From Convolutriloba macropyga (lineage: Eukaryota): DNA of 64,000 bases. Position numbers and translations under genes: made by a program. Each line of letters opens with the position of its first letter. The stretch's first letter is position 1. The stretch spans positions 27,280,001 through 27,344,000 of the forward strand of contig NC_134476.1 of the NCBI RefSeq assembly GCF_964194025.1, written 5' to 3'. Below, in pieces: positions 22,635 to 31,769 of the stretch. The notes below the pieces were generated by a model. That model did not search any database and had not been told where the DNA came from. It saw only the letters and a program-made list of their open reading frames with translations.

Positions 22635-22694
22635 AATAAAATATTAATTCATAGTCACTTATAGCAAATTGTTACGTTAATAGCATTAACAGAC

Positions 22695-23089
22695 CTTGGA
22701 TACGTCAATACTCCTAGCTCCATTTTTCGCCATATGGTAACCGGGATCAAACACTTCAGATTTGGGGAGCCACAACCCACATATGTACCATTGCTTATCA
22801 TCCACAGAATGATTACCCTCTCTAGGCTGATTGTGGGCTCGATTACTGGATCCAAACATCGGGATCCGGTTAATCAGAGATCCCATTTTGCCCACTTTGA
22901 GAGGCGAATGTGCTTTTTCCGTGATGTTGAAAATTCCCTGCAGTTCGTTCAGAATGTATCCCCGGACAAGCTGTTTCTTCTTGCGCACTATAGAGAAGTT
23001 GTTCTGAACTTTTCCGAGTTTGCTTCTGAGGTCTGTGATTGTCTCTTTACAGCTAACGTTGTCTTCTTTCAGACATTGGTTGGCCAGTT
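22695..23089 (-). CDS. UVRAG: UVRAG coding exon 3
   Basis: ATTTAG|AACTG ... AAG|GTCTGT (phase 1 to 0). ILNELQGIFNI...WYICGLWLPKSEVF matches LLSELSYIYPI...YFVCGVKLPNSEDF. Confidence 0.85.
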
Positions 23090-23717
23090 CTAAATCAAAT
23101 TAAACAGTTAAACGAAATAGTAGTTTTAGCTTCAATGTCTTTGTCTCGTAATGTCTTTGTCTTAGCTTCAATGTCGTTAGCTTCAATGTCTTTGTCTCTT
23201 ATTCCACTCAGTTATCTCCGATAATTAAACAGGTTTTTTAAACTAATTATTGGGAAGAAACCAACAAATTTTAACTAATTTGAAAACTTGATTTTCAAAA
23301 TAATATAAACAAAGGCTTGCATGAATTGTTTAATTTTTTTTCTGTTTTAAGTATCTTTAATCTTTTGGTTATCATCTAGTTTAATTGTTTCGAAAAAAAC
23401 TTTATCGGCAATTGCATGAAACCGAAAAATATTACACCTAGAATTTTTGCTCAAAGCAGTACATTAAGATCTCATACCAATCACCGTTTCATGAGCCTAA
23501 ACAAAGATCATATCAAACAACATGACCATGATCTCTTCTGCTTCGAAGCGAATCTTCGAAACTCTTACTATTAAGTAGCCAAGTACATGTTCGCTTTGAG
23601 TGCGAACATTATCTAATGTTTACAAAAAGGCCCAAAGTAATGTGCTTTATCAATGCAGTTGTCTATCACAATTGCAAGATGTGCATTTGACAGTTCAGTC
23701 TTCAACTATCACCTGAA

Positions 23718-24055
23718 ATGAAATTGCTGAAGATTGTGACTTTATTGTTTTCGACACTGGTATTATATCTCAACAACGCAAATTGTTCGGAGTCAAAAAC
23801 GCTTTCACATTTCTGCCAAAAGACGCTTCCAAAATTAAGGAAACAGTACAGTGACCTTGCAACTGAAATTGGGTATCTTTACTCATGCTGTGCCGAGATT
23901 TCGACTAAAACCCAAAATTCATGTTTACAAACAACCCTCGCGATTGTGCCCTTTGTAATGTTCAACCTGGAGTTCATGCTGGAAAGGTTGGAGACTGCAC
24001 GAGTAGCTCCCACGATAACCAAAGTTCCTAATATTGACGTCACTGCTCTGTCCAG
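23718..24055 (+). CDS. Annexin-like protein exon 1 (signal-peptide-like N-terminus, Cys-rich domain)
   Basis: MKLLKIVTLLFSTLVLYLNNANC..., ends PTITKVPNIDVTALS (annexin pre-core motif). Donor AG|GTGAAT, phase 2, compatible with exon 2. Confidence 0.75.
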
Positions 24056-24433
24056 GTGAATATTGATTGATAAGTATTAGCTACAGCTAAGAAGCAACAT
24101 GGTTAAACATAAACGACTACCGTCCTACGAATCGCTTTCAAATTTTGTTCGAGAGCATGTTTCATTAATATGAGTTCCGTAAGGTACAAGTGATAGTATT
24201 GGATCAAACAATTTAATCTTAATCAACGTCTGTCTTTCTACATCAAACCGATAAAGGATATTTCAATATCTGACAGACGAAAAGTTAAATTTCAGATTGA
24301 AAAAATTTGTCTGTAATTTAGACCAATTAGCTATCTTCATTCTCCGCTCAGAAAACTTCGACTTATATATTGTATTCTGAACTCATCCTAATTTCAATCC
24401 TGCCAGTTAATTTTTAAATTATGAATTTCAAAG

Positions 24434-24649
24434 AAAACTCCACAAAGCAATCGACGGATGGGGTACAGATGAGAATAAACTGATCAATGTCTTGTCAAGC
24501 ATCACTGGGAAGCAAAGAGTTCGACTGTCACTCAGGTACAAGGAGATGTACAAGTCATACCTCAAGAGTGACATCAGAGGAGATACATCAGGCAGTTTCA
24601 AAGACCTCCTCATTGCCCTAATGTACTTCCCCGAGGAACACGATGCATG
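24434..24649 (+). CDS. Annexin-like protein exon 2 (repeat 1)
   Basis: KLHKAIDGWGTDENKLINVL...QR...Y.EMY...L.SDIRGDTSGSFKDLLIALM; GxGT-38-D site intact. Not in the ORF track. Confidence 0.9.
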
Positions 24650-24844
24650 GTAGTATACAAAATTCATCCAGAAATGGTTGCATCACAACACATGAATCTT
24701 CACTCGCCAGCGGTTTGCTTGGCTTATCGTAGCCGGCAGATACCCGGCAAAATATCGTGATGCAGACATTTCCTAATTAATTTGAAAAATCCATTGCTCA
24801 GTTTTATCAATAAGCACAATTTCATTATAGCAAAAAAAAATAGC

Positions 24845-25420
24845 ACACTGCCCGCAAAAAAAATAGCAGTCAAAGTAAGTTAGCACCCCCCCCCCCATTT
24901 TTACGAAGTATAAATTCAATTTTTGAGGCAATATTACTCAAATCAACTTAAATCACATTTTAAAAACTATGTTTATACCATTGATGCCTACATGAGTCCT
25001 CTCGCCTACCTATACAACTCGGATAAAACGATCATTCACTTAGCAGAAAAATTCCAATGTGAATTTGATGAACGTCCTCCAAGTTTCACAGTAAAAAGAA
25101 AGTTATCACAAGATTATAATTTATTCACATCGTTTCTCTCTATAAGGTTTAACGCAAGCGCAAATTTTGCCATTGTTGCGCAAACCTGAAAACATCAAAT
25201 CTTGTGCCAACTTTTTACTGTTAAACTTGGCTGAAGTTCATCAACTTCAGATCGGAATTTCTAGTAAGTCAACGTTGCGTTTAGTCTTCGGAGTTTCGTA
25301 GATAGGGGATCAATGGTATAAAAATGTTTTCAAAATCTGATTTTAAGTTGGAGTAAGGTTGCCTCAAAAATTGCACTTCTTCGTGAATATAGGGATGCTA
25401 ATTTACTTTTGCCTTTCAGT
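24845..25420. mobile_element. Foldback MITE, Tc1/mariner-like
   Basis: Long diverged inverted arms (~250 bp), e.g. AATTTTTGAGGCAA / TTGCCTCAAAAATT and TATACCATTGAT / ATCAATGGTATA. Ends resemble Tc1 CACTG....CAAAA. Confidence 0.6.
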
Positions 25421-26179
25421 ATAATTATAATAAAAAACTAGACTTCGAGTGCCACGAAAATGTGTGAACATATCTTAGCACAACGCCCAAATACAATTCA
25501 AAATCTTAGAAATGTAAATAAAGGATGAATTGTAAAAAAAAAACATTTCAATGTGTCAGAGTCAAAACCATTAGCTGACCATTGTAAATCTATCAAACAC
25601 CATTTTCTTTGATTTCTCGCTCTGCTTTCAAAATTAGTGCAAAAAAAGCACGACGCAAAATCACTCATTTGATCATGCCGCAAACCTCTGGGCAAAGCAG
25701 CGACCCAAACCAGATTAAAATTATCTACTAAAAATAAACCGCGAGTTCCGAAATAAAGCTAATCTCAGCTCGCAGCTTTGATTTAAAAAAACCTGACTAG
25801 GAGTCTCTCTTCAACCGTGTGGTTCATTTTAACTCTAATTGCTTTTCATATTACGGCCGACCGGTTTAGGCTAAAGTATTTTTGTCGCCAGATATTTTCA
25901 AGAAAAGTAATCCGTGCGTCAAACTTATATAATAATAAAGCAAAAATCATTTCAAAAACATAACTGGAAGATTGCCAAAAAATAGCCGCAATAGCTTCGT
26001 AGATCTGCATTATCAAAAAGACAGTAACATAGCCAACAGATTGCCGGAATAGCTGCAAAAGAAGAGACTTGCGTGCCGTAAAATACAGATAGAAACAGTT
26101 GGAAAAAAGTCATTGTGGCCAAATTTTATTCAAAGGGTGTGTATATTTGAGAACAATTTTGGGTGCAAAAACTTTAGAC

Positions 26180-26258
26180 GAAGCAGAGGTTCGAACCCCC
26201 AATCGAACCCCCCAGAAGTGTAGGAACCGGCTGCATTTACCAATGGGCTACATGTCCC
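26180..26258 (-). repeat. tRNA-derived (SINE head-like) fragment
   Basis: Minus strand GGGACATGTAGCCCATTGGTAAA (A box-like) ... GGTTCGAACC (B box). No intact cloverleaf. Confidence 0.4.
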
Positions 26259-26959
26259 TTGTGCTCTATTAAATTATAAACAAATTTGTTTTAGCAACAG
26301 GTCAAATTCTGAATACAAGCAATTTAGGTCACGCGAAAGCAAGAAATTAAGCGTGAAAAAAGTCTGAAAACGTGAAGCGATAAAGTTCTAGAACAAAATG
26401 TAAAAAGAGCGTCAGACGACGAAACCAAAAAAACCAAGAGCACCGCAATATAGCTCCGCTCAGCTTACAGCTTTGTAGCTATAAAAAGAAACAGCAGCTA
26501 TGAAAAAAAAACAAATAGCCTTCAATTAGAATGGCACACATCCACTTGACCTTATCTCTGAATTAAAGTAAGAGAGAAGTCAAATTCAGAGTGAGGAATT
26601 CAACCTCTAAGAACCGCACTTCACATCATAAGTATGTCTCCAAAGCAGTTTCTGTGAATCGTATACTTTGAGACAAATGAGCTGAAAGGCTCTAAGATCA
26701 CTTAATACCCCCTGTGCGCTACCTGTTTATCCCGTTTTGGGGACGAAAAGTCAAATGGGTCAGACAAAAAATCGGTCAAGCGAAAAATTGCATTAAAAAA
26801 AGACCAACAGGACTAATATAATAGCTACAAAATTAGTTTAAGAGCAATTAGTCACGCCGACGAACAAAAAAATCGCTTCAATATGAGTGAAAAATGACGT
26901 CACACACAAAATTCAGTAGAAATTGCATTAAAGAATGAAGAATGCTAGTAACAAAAATC

Positions 26960-27135
26960 GGATCTATTCTGTTCTGCCCCCCCCCCCCCCGCAGCTTAGT
27001 GAGCTTAAATCTTTTATGACACCCAGGCGCACGTGCTATTTTCTTACATAGTAACGTGCTATATAACAAGATATAATTTGTAACTGGGGGTCAAAAAACA
27101 CTGGGGGGAGGGGGGGGGCGAAACAGAATAGATCC
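26960..27135. mobile_element. MITE with GG..CC termini and 8-bp TSD (Merlin/MULE-like)
   Basis: TIRs GGATCTATTCTGTT / AACAGAATAGATCC; TSD CAAAAATC at 26952-26959 and 27136-27143. Related copies at ~50731-50890 and ~52077-52243. Confidence 0.75.
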
Positions 27136-28145
27136 CAAAAATCTTGACAAAAAACAAAAAAACCAAGGGAAGGTCAATAATAGCCTCAGCTTTCGCTTTG
27201 CCGAAAATAAAGAAAACTTAAGCGCGAGCTGACACGTGTAGGATTAATAAGGTGAAGAGAGAAAATTCTACAATGAAAATAGATTTACTCGTTAACATCG
27301 ACAAGTTGCTCAACAAAAACAAAATTGATACGCAAACAGTAACTAATGATGTTAACGATGAGTTCAAATAGATCCGACGTTGAAAAGAGCCAGAAATTTA
27401 ATAAAAATAATAACTTAATTTGCAAACTCAATTAAATTTAACTCCTGAATTGATACTAGAAAATTTTAAACCAATTACAGCCCAGTTTTTCAGAGTTGAA
27501 TTTTTTTTATTTACCTGCATACTAAATCTAAAGTGATGAAACAATTGATTGGACTGTAATTTTCGCGGGATACGGCAATGCTTCAGCGGCTGATGGGGAC
27601 TTGATATGGATCTATCCCAACAGGACAGGAGATTATCCAAGCAAATAATTTTCGTATTAATTATTACTACCAATTTAGGGCAATTCAATGTTCTTGGCTC
27701 TTTTTGGATCACGCCAGCTTTCAGTGATTTTTAACGTCGGCTCTTTTTGACTGAACCCTTTTAACATTTAATAAATTTGAGAAATTTTGCACGATATAAC
27801 CAAATTCCATTCAACTTCCGACCAGACAACTCGGTTTCGGAAAAAAACCATGGAAAAAACCCCCTAACCAAAATTAAATAGGAAAAAAACCGACGAAAAG
27901 AAACCTCCAAGGAAAAAACCCACGGAAATAAACCCTCACTTGACTGTCAAAGAGATGTCAAATCAATCAAATTAAATAAAACACAATTACACAGATAAAA
28001 AGCAAAAGATTGAAACAGTTTCTCAATTATGCAATTGTCAGCAAATGAAAACTGGTCTAAAACTCAAACAGGTACCGAGTTAGGAAATGGGATTTCGCAA
28101 ATATGTCTGACCGTTTGAATTTAGTTTGAGCGTTTGTTGTTATAG

Positions 28146-28194
28146 GATTGTGAGAGACGCGATTGCCCCAACTGGAACGAAACACGACGTACTG
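28146..28194 (+). CDS. Annexin-like protein exon 3 (49 nt)
   Basis: TATAG|G ATT GTG AGA GAC GCG ATT GCC CCA ACT GGA ACG ... CTG|GTCAGA encodes IVRDAIAPTGTKHDVL, the start of repeat 2; phases 2 to 0 fit both neighbours. Confidence 0.8.
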
Positions 28195-28577
28195 GTCAGA
28201 TACATATAATATTCTACCATAACAACAGCTAGACCTATTATAGCTCACCTACATATGTCGGTTCACTTTGCAACTTCATTGCTTTAATATCAGCAATTCA
28301 TGGAAGCTTATGATTTTATCATCATCCAAAGACCTCCACAAAACAGACAAACAAGTTTTTCCTTATGAGTGCCAAAAGCAAAGAGTTTAGCAGTTTACAG
28401 TAGTGAATATTCACTGACTTTTTCATAAAAAAACTAAATTAAAATTAAAAACAAACAGCTTTAACCAGCACCTCAATACAATTCAAATTCTTTCAGTAAA
28501 TATTTATTCTTTCATGAGTGATAGTTATAAAAAGTAACTGGGATAATACGTCTCAAGTTGAACACAGTGCAATTTAG

Positions 28578-29069
28578 GTTGACGTCATAGCCACAAGCTC
28601 AGTAAACGAAATGCTCCACATGCGTGAAGCCTACCAGCGATTCTACAACATCTCGGTCGAAAGGGATCTAGCCAAGGAACTAAACGGGCAGGGTATCTAC
28701 AGAGATCTCATTCTCCATTTGGTCAACCGCTACACCAACAAGCAAAACATCACGTGGGTGAAAGACATGGTTAAACGGAGCGGCGACGCCTCAGATGGTG
28801 ATTTGAATAACTTTGTCCGAGTTATGAGGGCACTATACGCTTGCGGATTGGCAGGACGGCATTACTATTTTGCTCAAAGAATCCATTCAGCTGTGGCTGG
28901 AGCAGGCACTAAAGACTCAGAGCTCATTGGTCTGATCACTTCTCGAACAGAGCGGGATTTAAGGGCTGTCCAAGAGAGCTATCTAACGCTATACGAACAC
29001 AGTTTGGCTTCTGATTTGAAAAATGATCTTTCCGGAGACTATTTGAAGCTCATGCTTAAACTGCTCTAA
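28578..29069 (+). CDS. Annexin-like protein exon 4 (rest of repeat 2, shortened repeat 3, repeat 4)
   Basis: TTTAG|GTTGAC; ends FAQRIHSAVAGAGTKDSELIGLITSRTERDL...SLASDLKNDLSGDYLKLMLKLL*. Joined CDS is 1095 nt (364 aa). Confidence 0.9.
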   Translation, partial: VDVIATSSVNEMLHMREAYQRFYNISVERDLAKELNGQGIYRDLILHLVNRYTNKQNITWVKDMVKRSGDASDGDLNNFVRVMRALYACGLAGRHYYFAQRIHSAVAGAGTKDSELIGLITSRTERDLRAVQESYLTLYEHSLASDLKNDLSGDYLKLMLKLL

Positions 29070-29550
29070 TTGCTGAGAGATGTTGTAAAAAGCAGTGAAT
29101 TCTTAGAGGTATTCGTAACACTTGCACAGAAAATCAACCCCTTAATATTGGCGGCATTATTATTGAAGCTCATGACTGTAATTTAAAACAATATAACCCT
29201 TCAAAAACAATATTGTGGTAGTGTAAATGATTTCCCTATTTGATTTCTTCCTTGAAATCACACACTGTTGAGGAACCTGAAAAATTGGTCCCGAGAAGGG
29301 TACTATCCAAATACATTTTTGACAATTAAAAAAGGCACCGTTCCCTTTAACAGGTGGAATGGTAAGCCTCTATGATTGATCTAACCAAAACGTTATAATT
29401 GATGTAACTTTACGTTGCTACGGCCATACTCACCTCTTCAAGTATATATAAATGATTATCAAAACAAAAACGGGCATTCGTTTCTCCATACCAGTTTAGA
29501 ACAAAATAAACTCTGAAGGAGAGAAGAAGTTCATCAGATATTAATCTTAC

Positions 29551-29919
29551 CTAATTCTGATAAAATCTTAGCATTCGCCTCGCGAGCATTTCGTCTGTTG
29601 AGGTTTTCACACTTTATTCTGAAATGTTCAGCCGCCATTGTTGTCGTACGTTGGCTCAAATACTCAATACGTTCCAGTTTCTTCCGTGTAGCTTCAAACT
29701 TATCCATGAGGTCATTAATCTGAGACCGGAGATTGTTGCGTTCTTTCCTCTTCTGTTGAATAACAAATGCCTTTCTGTGGATAAGGCGAAGCCTCTGCTC
29801 ATCAAGAACCCTGTTTTTTATAGTTGTGAAGCTGACGTCACTCAGATTGCGCAATAGAGGGGGTTCTATCCTCGGATAAATCGAGGGGTTATCGAAAGCA
29901 CCAAGGTTTTGGATAGAAT
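29551..29919 (-). CDS. UVRAG: UVRAG coding exon 2 (coiled coil)
   Basis: GTTCAG|AT ... G|GTAAGA (phase 1 to 1). RLRLIHRKAFVIQQ resembles SLLRLHRAQCAIKQ. Confidence 0.8.
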
Positions 29920-30690
29920 CTGAACAGACAACTCTTATGAACAAATAATTCACTCTCATTAACTATTAAGGAAGCTCTGTATTAAGCGTTTGATTATCAA
30001 ACTTCAACCCATTTCAATTCAAACTATCCGCAATATAATGAAAAAGCCTTGATAAAAACTTTCTATTATCACAAAATATTGACTAGTGATCAATACAGTT
30101 TTTTTTAAAAAAAACAAACAAACCAAAAAACACCTGAAACTTTTCTTACAGATCTTAAAACAAAAAAAACATAACCGACTAAACGTCGGAAGAATTGCTC
30201 TTGAACGACTAGTGGAAGCTCTAATCAATTGCAGCCTGCTTCAGTCGGGGGGGGGGGGGGGGGGTGGGGGAGCCTAAATGGGACTAAGAAGTTCTCTAGT
30301 GGGCTTCAAATAACCACATTAGAGGTTAACATATACCACTATTAAGATTTCAATTGAATGGCACTAGTTTCGGCGCACTTTTCATTTGACTTTTAGTAAT
30401 AAATTGCCGTCAATTGAGTTCAGCTGCTTGAAATTGTGATTGAGAGAGAATTTTAGATCACGCGAAATGCAAAAAGTCAAGGGCGTAAAAGTCACTCGAA
30501 AAGTCAAAATTGTCAAGCGAAAATTTTGTATAGAAAACATAGCCGGTAGAATACCAGAAACGACTCGAATCGTCGTGCAAAATAATCTCTACCCTAACTT
30601 GGACAAAATCAGATTATCGAAAAAAAACACTAGAAATAACAACAATACTAGACCAATATAACATAAAAAGCGTTAAAACTTTTTCAGTTC

Positions 30691-30980
30691 AGGGGTGTGG
30701 GTAGGTTCTGGTGGAGGGGGGGTTGGAAGGTGGGGGCAGGTAGGTTGTGTAGGTAGGTGGGGTGGGGTTAGTAGGTACGTTGCGGGGGGGGAGGTAGGTA
30801 CGCGGGGGGGGGGAAGGTAGGTACCAGGGGGGGGAGGTAGGTACGGGGGGGTAGTTACATTGGGGTTGGGGGGTAGGTACATTGGGGGGGGGGGGGAGTT
30901 GGGTGGTGGGGGTAGGTACGTTGGGGGGAGGGGGGTAGGTACGTGGGGGGTATTTTTTTGGGGGGCGGGGTAGGTAGTTA
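30691..30980 (+). repeat. G-rich minisatellite (GnTAGGTAC units), G-quadruplex-prone
   Basis: Repeated GGGG..TAGGTAC(G/A/C) units with long G runs. Confidence 0.85.
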
Positions 30981-31769
30981 AATGGGACCAAATTTTCTCA
31001 AATTGACCTCTTCACCTTGAATTACAGACTGTTACCAATTGCTATACATTACAAACTAAGCTACTGTTAAAGTCCAATGTTCGAAAACAGAAGTCAACAA
31101 TCAAAAACGGAGGTAAACGCTCGATCTGAAAGAAGTCAAAATTCAATTCATGAACAAACTTGCTTTCTGCTAAAAAAACCTGTGGAATCTCAATACTCCT
31201 CTTCGAGTCGTAAAAAGACACACAGGTTACAATAATTGCTATGAACTACGTTCAAGAGCAATTAAACAACATTAACTCAAATGTTACTCAAACTTTAACA
31301 ACCAAATATCAACAAATTGAACATCCCTGAGACAACAGACGTAGCGAAAAAATGGAATTATCCCGAGTGCAACAAAAACAATGGGTAGAATTACTTGAGA
31401 CAGAAATCTGATTACATAAACTTTGATGGGCACCTGAATTTTCAACAAAATGGAAAAAATGTGCTGCAAAAAATTGTTTTGAATCCGAGGCAATCAAAAA
31501 GTATTTTGCTGTCCATAAAAGACTAAAACTAGCAACAGCATTGGTACTGAAACGTTTCACAAAAGCGCCGTTCTGCTAAATAGTATGAGCGCATCGCTTT
31601 TAAATTCAGTAGAAAAACGAATTGAGCTGAACCAACCAACGAGCGGTTCGCTTCTGTAGTAGCTAGCTGGGGCTTAGGGATGCATCATTGGGGAACGGAG
31701 TAGGGGTCGAGCAAAGAAAGGGGGTTGATTTGTAGGGCTAGATGGGGGGGGGGTCGAAATCATCAGGTG

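Follow-up and report, generated by a model that had tools for sequence, protein, structure and literature searches.

A conserved annexin gene of the acoel Convolutriloba macropyga combines a predicted signal peptide and a four-cysteine N-terminal domain with a reduced annexin core

The stretch of DNA analysed here (the window, 64,000 nucleotides (nt) in length, C9:27280001-27344000, on contig NC_134476.1 of the Convolutriloba macropyga assembly) contains an annexin gene on the + strand, flanked on both sides by conserved neighbours. Its product carries, in order, a predicted signal peptide, a four-cysteine N-terminal domain (N-domain), and an annexin core in which one repeat is largely lost. 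The gene consists of four exons (23718-24055, 24434-24649, 28146-28194, and 28578-29069), and script assembly gave a spliced length of 1095 nt and a product of 364 amino acids (aa) followed by a TAA stop, with the frame kept throughout. All three introns run GT...AG, every exon edge carries AG...GT signals, and the start of the mini-exon is fixed at 28146 by the frame, which is lost when the start is moved to 28147. The 364-aa protein opens with MKLLKIVTLLFSTLVLYLNNANCSES; its N-terminus reads MKLLKIVTLLFSTLVLYLNNANC, followed by the predicted cut and then SES, and its cysteines are located at positions 23, 33, 57, 58, 69, and 290. The model of four phase-compatible GT-AG exons encoding 364 aa, as proposed in the first-pass annotation of this locus, was thus reproduced by the script assembly and is supported by the intact orthologues described below. 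A further in-frame exon upstream, which that annotation had raised as a possibility, is unlikely, given an in-frame TGA at 23688-23690, 10 codons 5′ of the ATG, and an upstream neighbour that leaves only ~615 base pairs (bp). The C. macropyga genome comprises 1 175.98 Mb in 15 chromosomal pseudomolecules (PMC13650328), and the genome searches reported here covered the assembly of 1,175,981,408 bases.

An exhaustive phmmer search with exon 1 against 1.84 billion representatives returned one match cluster (P0001, P0002), which lies on the ENA assembly contig L012. At L012:9845-10399, the leader, the Cys domain, and annexin repeat 1 are embedded in one unbroken 184-codon frame, which stops at ...PEEHDAW, the same end as that of exon 2 in the window. 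A profile search identified a second 184-aa frame of the same make-up at L013:10001-10555 (P0003), and a search with exon 4 identified L017 (P0014), which is a closer relative of the window gene than L012 and L013. The gene models of these relatives are all intact, with three exons and 364 aa in L012, three exons and 364 aa in L013, and five exons and 365 aa in L017, and a 49-nt mini-exon of identical size is present in all three. The genes on both sides of the window annexin have homologues in the same order at the L012, L013, and L017 loci, and because the neighbours on both sides are kept in order, the three annexin genes are orthologues. Intron 1 is located after ALSR (phase 2) in the window, is absent from L012 and L013, and lies nine codons earlier and in phase 0 in L017; since it is absent or moved among the orthologues, the joining of exon 1 to exon 2 is independent of any one splice prediction. 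The PF00191 match in exon 2 begins at profile position 5 (positions 5-66), and the end of exon 1 (..ALSR/KLHKAIDGWGTDE) therefore supplies profile positions 1-4 of repeat 1. The leader, the Cys domain, and repeat 1 being in a single open frame in L012 and L013, exon 1 is therefore part of the annexin gene, and the first-pass joining of exon 1 to the annexin core is borne out by the comparison. Derivation of exon 1 from a different gene is ruled out by the unbroken L012 and L013 frames together with the synteny.

The amino acid identity of the window protein is 67% to L017 and 50% to both L012 and L013, and L012 and L013 share 79%. Ratios of nonsynonymous to synonymous substitution rates (dN/dS) were calculated between L012 and L013 by the Nei-Gojobori method, and are rough values because of the high dS of this pair; they were 0.65 for the leader, 0.10 for the N-domain, and 0.045, 0.054, and 0.036 for repeats 1, 2, and 4, respectively. 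Between the window gene and L017, the proportions of nonsynonymous and synonymous differences (pN and pS) were 0.22 and 0.77. Contigs of three resequenced samples carry at least seven exonic single-nucleotide polymorphisms (SNPs); six of the seven listed are synonymous and the seventh is K64R, and by our own arithmetic on the listed SNPs, the probability of at least six of seven being synonymous is ~0.001 on the assumption that one change in four is synonymous. Purifying selection thus acts on the gene in the frame proposed here, on exon 1 as well as on the other exons.

The leader was judged by a heuristic script requiring a positive n-region, an h-region of 7-15 residues, and small residues at -3 and -1. 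In the window protein it begins with a net charge of +2, continues with an uncharged core of 13 residues, and carries A at -3 and C at -1. Across the four orthologues, the n-region contains one or two basic residues (charge +1/+2), and the core has 11-13 uncharged residues, its 9-residue hydropathy peaking at 2.4-3.7. The small -3/-1 residues follow 4-6 residues past the core at aligned positions (ANC/S, TTA/K, and ATA/K); for L017 the rule is passed by several weaker candidates, including TLS/T. The basic, hydrophobic, and A-x-C regions described in the first pass were therefore recovered, and the n-, h-, and c-region and -3/-1 rules pass in all four orthologues; the same script found no such leader features in five canonical annexins. 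Identity of the leader across the orthologues is just 17-38%, with the physicochemical layout retained, and a layout kept without the sequence is typical of signal peptides.

Behind the leader, four cysteines are invariant in the four orthologues, with a spacing of C-x23-CC-x10-C (x11 in L017); the C33, C57, C58, and C69 placed before the annexin core in the first-pass annotation are thus conserved in every one of them. The N-domain also contains an almost invariant hydrophobic stretch, AIVPFV(M/L)FNL(E/Q)..L(E/A), and the orthologue alignment revealed no conserved His or Asp partners near its Cys residues. The obvious reading of four invariant Cys behind a signal peptide would be two disulfides. 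AlphaFold2 with the four-sequence alignment predicted a four-helix domain and, behind it, a disordered linker; the mean predicted local distance difference test score (pLDDT) was 76, with values of 80-90 for residues 1-70. An earlier fold of the N-domain plus repeat 1 from three sequences gave a pLDDT of 51, too poor for use. Within this linker, before repeat 1, the motif RVAPT (aa 95-99, 24000-24014) is invariant in the four orthologues, and could be a processing or recognition site.

The N-domain has no sequence relatives outside this clade in the exhaustive phmmer and profile searches, and exon 1 matched no family in Pfam; a match to the ArcB TM domain was below the Pfam threshold and is ascribed to chance. 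Paralogues with the C-CC-C domain, a search for which had been proposed in the first pass, were absent from the worm's own genome, where only the gene itself and one chance match at E = 5.7 were retrieved. Comparisons with the N-domain model likewise gave nothing at E <= 0.001 in Foldseek against the PDB (best E = 7), template-modelling (TM) scores of at most 0.45 in the Atlas shape search, and a best Z of 5.9 in VIA-align wide, which is in the range of generic helical arrangements. Language-model features of the N-domain in the ESM Atlas had no usable neighbour, and saposin rows (E about 9) were dismissed as noise.

The annexin core was assigned by PF00191 (cut-off 25), which gave 67.4 bits (1.2e-18) for exon 2 and 83.2 bits (1.3e-23, in two stretches) for exon 4. 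In the genome scan, the repeats at 24432-24620 and 28866-29063 were above the cut-off and repeat 2 was below it (20.6 bits), so that repeats 1 and 4 alone score over it and the core falls short of four full-length (~70 aa) repeats. Alignment with five canonical annexins indicated that each of the four orthologues has lost ~45 residues of repeat 3, comprising the linker, helices A and B with the Ca2+ loop, and part of helices C/D; the last helix of the repeat is kept and runs into repeat 4. The type II motif GxGT-38-D/E, counted on the translation, is intact in repeats 1 and 4 and has no counterpart in repeat 3. In repeat 2 the Ca2+ motif is half-degenerate: the acidic cap is kept (E in the window protein), and the loop reads PTGT or PSGT, or DTVT in the case of L012 and L013. 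Accordingly, the annexin core named in the first pass is present, with PF00191 repeats, but it is not a canonical four-repeat one. Among PDB entries, repeat 4 aligned best with the fourth repeat of annexins A5 and A6, and the other annexin genes of the genome (on C12, C15, C3, and C7) share ~30-42% identity over the last repeat; the window annexin is a divergent, single-copy member of the family. Two N-x-S/T sequons, N225-I-S (28647-28655) and N258-I-T (28746-28754), recur at the same positions in L017 (NAS and NST) and are absent from L012 and L013; they are weakly consistent with glycosylation in the secretory pathway.

One of these other annexins, on C15 at ~48.65 Mb and corresponding to L004:1264-2583 (-), is an ordinary paralogue of the annexin A7/A11 type with a long Pro/Gly/Tyr-rich N-terminus, which is encoded together with the first repeats in one 439-codon exon. 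Its orthologue is expressed in a related acoel, as a spliced Logan transcript (P0020, 83% identity), and matches to a paralogous annexin in molluscs, annelids, and echinoderms were at 46-51% identity.

Reviews describe annexins as proteins without signal peptides that leave cells unconventionally (PMC12249911, PMC7869467). The first-pass statement that annexins lack signal peptides agrees with them as a general rule, but precedents exist (PMC2791119, PMC5078806). Hs4F01/Hg4F01, a gland effector of cyst nematodes, combines four annexin domains with a SignalP-predicted leader that occurs only in Heterodera (PMC2791119), and a venom protein of Psyttalia concolor, detected in venom by proteomics, bears two annexin domains and a signal peptide of 20 aa (PMC5078806). 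Our literature search found no papers on annexins in acoels. The acoel protein resembles 4F01 of Heterodera schachtii and H. glycines in being an annexin with a predicted N-terminal signal peptide, in its restricted lineage, and in being apparently made for export. It differs in that 4F01, an oesophageal-gland effector of a plant parasite, has 340 aa, four complete annexin domains, and no cysteine-rich N-domain, whereas the acoel is a worm that is free-living and photosymbiotic. The Psyttalia protein, compared by description only, differs in its two annexin domains and its origin in an insect venom gland, and a four-Cys N-domain is not described for it. The restricted distributions of the three leaders and the acoel-only N-domain suggest that the acoel, Heterodera, and Psyttalia leaders originated independently. 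The acoel gene is thus a further case of a rare known kind, the annexins with predicted signal peptides, and what is new in it is the Cys domain, the repeat 3 deletion, and the free-living symbiotic host.

Compared with the canonical annexins A5 and A6 (PDB 1avr and 1m9i), the acoel protein shares the PF00191 repeats, the alignment over repeat 4, and the GxGT-38-D/E motif in repeats 1 and 4, whereas it adds a secretion-type leader and a ~85-aa four-Cys helical domain, lacks ~45 residues of repeat 3, and has a degenerate Ca2+ loop in repeat 2. Annexin A1 has an amphipathic helix at its N-terminus that packs into repeat 3. The conserved hydrophobic helix of the acoel N-domain (AIVPFV.FNLE..LE) co-occurs with a truncated repeat 3, and it is tempting, by analogy only, to link this helix to the hole in repeat 3 as in annexin A1, although the two helices have no sequence similarity.

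Features of the annexin gene and of the adjoining intergenic stretch, in window coordinates
Feature	Position	Strand	Basis
Predicted cleavable signal peptide, aa 1-23 (MKLLK / IVTLLFSTLVLYL / NNANC)	23718..23786	+	Leader rules; same layout in 3 orthologues
Clade-specific N-terminal domain, aa 24-108	23787..24041	+	4 conserved Cys, hydrophobic helix AIVPFVMFNLEFML, linker RVAPT
Exon 1 end, where helix A of repeat 1 begins (..ALSR)	24042..24055	+	Contiguous in L012, L013
Intron 1, phase 2	24056..24433	+	GT..AG
Exon 2, annexin repeat 1, type II Ca2+ motif intact (GWGT-38-D)	24434..24649	+	PF00191 1.2e-18
Intron 2, full of very high-copy repeats	24650..28145	+	Contig depth in DNA runs
Exon 3, 49-nt mini-exon, start of repeat 2, degenerate Ca2+ loop (IAPTGT)	28146..28194	+	Frame check
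Intron 3	28195..28577	+	GT..AG
Exon 4 first part, rest of weak repeat 2	28578..28724	+	20.6 bits; alignment to canonical repeat 2
Repeat 3 remnant, aa 251-298	28725..28868	+	Alignment with 5 canonical annexins
Repeat 4, type II Ca2+ motif intact (GAGT-38-D), then TAA	28869..29069	+	PF00191 67 bits on 28866-29063
Intergenic stretch toward upstream neighbour, presumed promoter and 5′ untranslated region	23104..23717	.	tblastx matches end ~23103

Four DNA runs, all from one study, contain this locus, and they are genomic, since their contigs read through intron 1. At the 3.5-kb intron 2 (about 24858 to 28543), the summed contig depth in the runs reaches 10^5-10^6, up to ~7.9e5, compared with ~50 on the exons. 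Intron 1 is polymorphic, with a 27-bp insertion at 24158 in three of the four runs and five SNPs per 378 bp. In the N-terminal half of the L017 gene (8467-8767 and 8903-9320), a second intron, inside repeat 1, requires a GC donor and starts with a CT microsatellite; introns of this half are placed differently from one orthologue to another, and they seem to have been gained or inserted recently and independently. At L017:10868-11047, ~400 bp 3′ of the stop of the orthologue, the final part of the last exon recurs as a degenerate, partial copy (..LASDLKRDLSRDTLKLMLELI).

The upstream neighbour (22686-23103) is conserved in all four species, with tblastx matches extending to ~23103 in all relatives. 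Taking its strand from the L012 gene call, it appears to stand head-to-head with the annexin gene and to share ~615 bp of intergenic DNA with it. The downstream neighbour (29534-29959, -), also conserved in all four species, encodes a coiled-coil-like protein that belongs to no Pfam family. Farther downstream, the window contains a proline-rich open frame at 30689-30991 (-) with PPPNVPTPTTQ... repeats, where a sharp jump in GC skew occurs at 30-32 kb. One relative carries, upstream of its orthologue, a Polinton/Maverick-like element with an rve integrase and a family-B DNA polymerase, at L013:1351-5849 and on L014, which are two contigs of one sample. Separately, a mitochondrial COX1 frame contained 11 TGA codons, which fits the invertebrate mitochondrial code, and its longest clean piece was 74 aa.

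Collectively, we assign a probability of roughly 0.68 to the reading that this locus holds a conserved functional gene, shared by Convolutriloba macropyga and related acoels, whose annexin product enters the secretory pathway and, judging from its sequence features, would probably act inside secretory compartments or outside the cell. The observation of the first-pass annotation is confirmed, in that the leader, the four-Cys domain, and the annexin core stand in one conserved protein; this architecture is strongly supported, and the interpretation as a whole is partly supported, secretion being the part that we infer and the suggested mucus or gland role being conjecture. In the mechanism that we propose, the signal peptide of 23-24 residues would take the nascent chain into the endoplasmic reticulum (ER) and be cleaved after ANC (23/24). 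The mature protein of ~341 aa would then open with the small four-helix domain of the predicted fold, whose four Cys would form two disulfides in the oxidising lumen. The conserved RVAPT linker joins this domain to a core that, by sequence, comprises repeats 1, 2, and 4 and the last helix of repeat 3. The type II Ca2+ motifs seen in repeats 1 and 4 may mediate binding to acidic phospholipids on luminal or extracellular leaflets. A Ca2+-rich lumen or seawater would supply the Ca2+, and at seawater-level Ca2+, lipid binding would be essentially constitutive. Candidate target surfaces are secretory-granule, wound, or symbiont-facing membranes.

Several observations weigh against this reading. The 19-residue hydropathy maximum of the leaders, 1.3-1.7, is borderline for a membrane anchor; outside the N-domain, cysteine positions are not conserved, and cleavage would leave the window protein with an odd number of cysteines; and the L017 model keeps its frame only with one GC-AG intron. 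Moreover, only genomic DNA runs, with no splice information in them, cover the locus, and exon 1 matched no Logan transcript-derived protein, in contrast to the ordinary annexin of the related acoel, present there as transcript P0020. This hints at a low or cell-type-restricted expression of the window annexin. The small number of orthologues in the databases means little, because gene callers missed exon 1 in L017.

The hydropathy maxima, being close to the usual transmembrane threshold, and the less clear-cut -3/-1 sites in L017 would also suit a leader that serves as an uncleaved signal anchor, which would make the product a type II membrane protein with the annexin core tethered in the lumen or outside the cell. 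However, uncharged cores of 11-13 residues are too short to span a bilayer, and small -3/-1 residues lie in alignment 4-6 residues past the core in all four orthologues, and we regard an anchor as unlikely. The annexin family itself is cytosolic and exits cells by unconventional routes (PMC12249911), and secretion of the window annexin is deduced from its sequence, both of which would suit a hydrophobic N-terminus without ER targeting: the protein would then be a cytosolic annexin, its leader a membrane-inserting or protein-binding helix, and its Cys metal-bound or reduced. We consider this improbable, since the leader keeps its layout but not its sequence, as signal peptides do, the C-x23-CC-x10/11-C pattern in a helical domain right after the leader fits disulfides, and the Cys have no conserved His or Asp partners near them. 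As for an unexpressed or decaying gene, or a model that fuses exons of different genes, the runs that cover the locus are all genomic, and exon 1 has no paralogue in the genome; set against these points, all four orthologues are intact, equally long, and syntenic, dN/dS is far under 1 everywhere but in the leader, the listed exonic SNPs are mostly synonymous, and the frame is continuous in L012 and L013, all of which makes such a locus very improbable. A secretory-pathway annexin is therefore our preferred reading. A wider version of it, which we hold unlikely when all of its parts are taken together, would have the N-domain as a new fold filling the repeat 3 gap, so that a rebuilt, disulfide-stabilised extracellular annexin is obtained. 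That annexin would belong to a lineage-specific secretory structure of convolutid acoels, for example at the luminal membrane of extrusomes or of rhabdoid and mucus granules, or at the membrane that encloses the algal symbiont, and it would be one case of a more general tendency of acoels to route folds that are classically cytosolic into the secretory pathway.

Annexins are a textbook case of export from the cell without a signal peptide, and their route across the membrane is debated. In the acoels, an annexin with a predicted signal peptide and a putative disulfide domain is kept under purifying selection in at least four species, and the annexin membrane-binding module may thus be usable directly on the luminal or extracellular side. 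Together with those of cyst nematodes and a braconid wasp, annexins with predicted signal peptides would now be found in at least three separate animal lineages. The window gene further provides a natural minimal annexin core without most of repeat 3, and it offers an orphan four-cysteine domain modelled as four helices. The secretory biology of photosymbiotic acoels is almost unknown at the molecular level, and the gene is a candidate marker of a secretory cell type in these animals.

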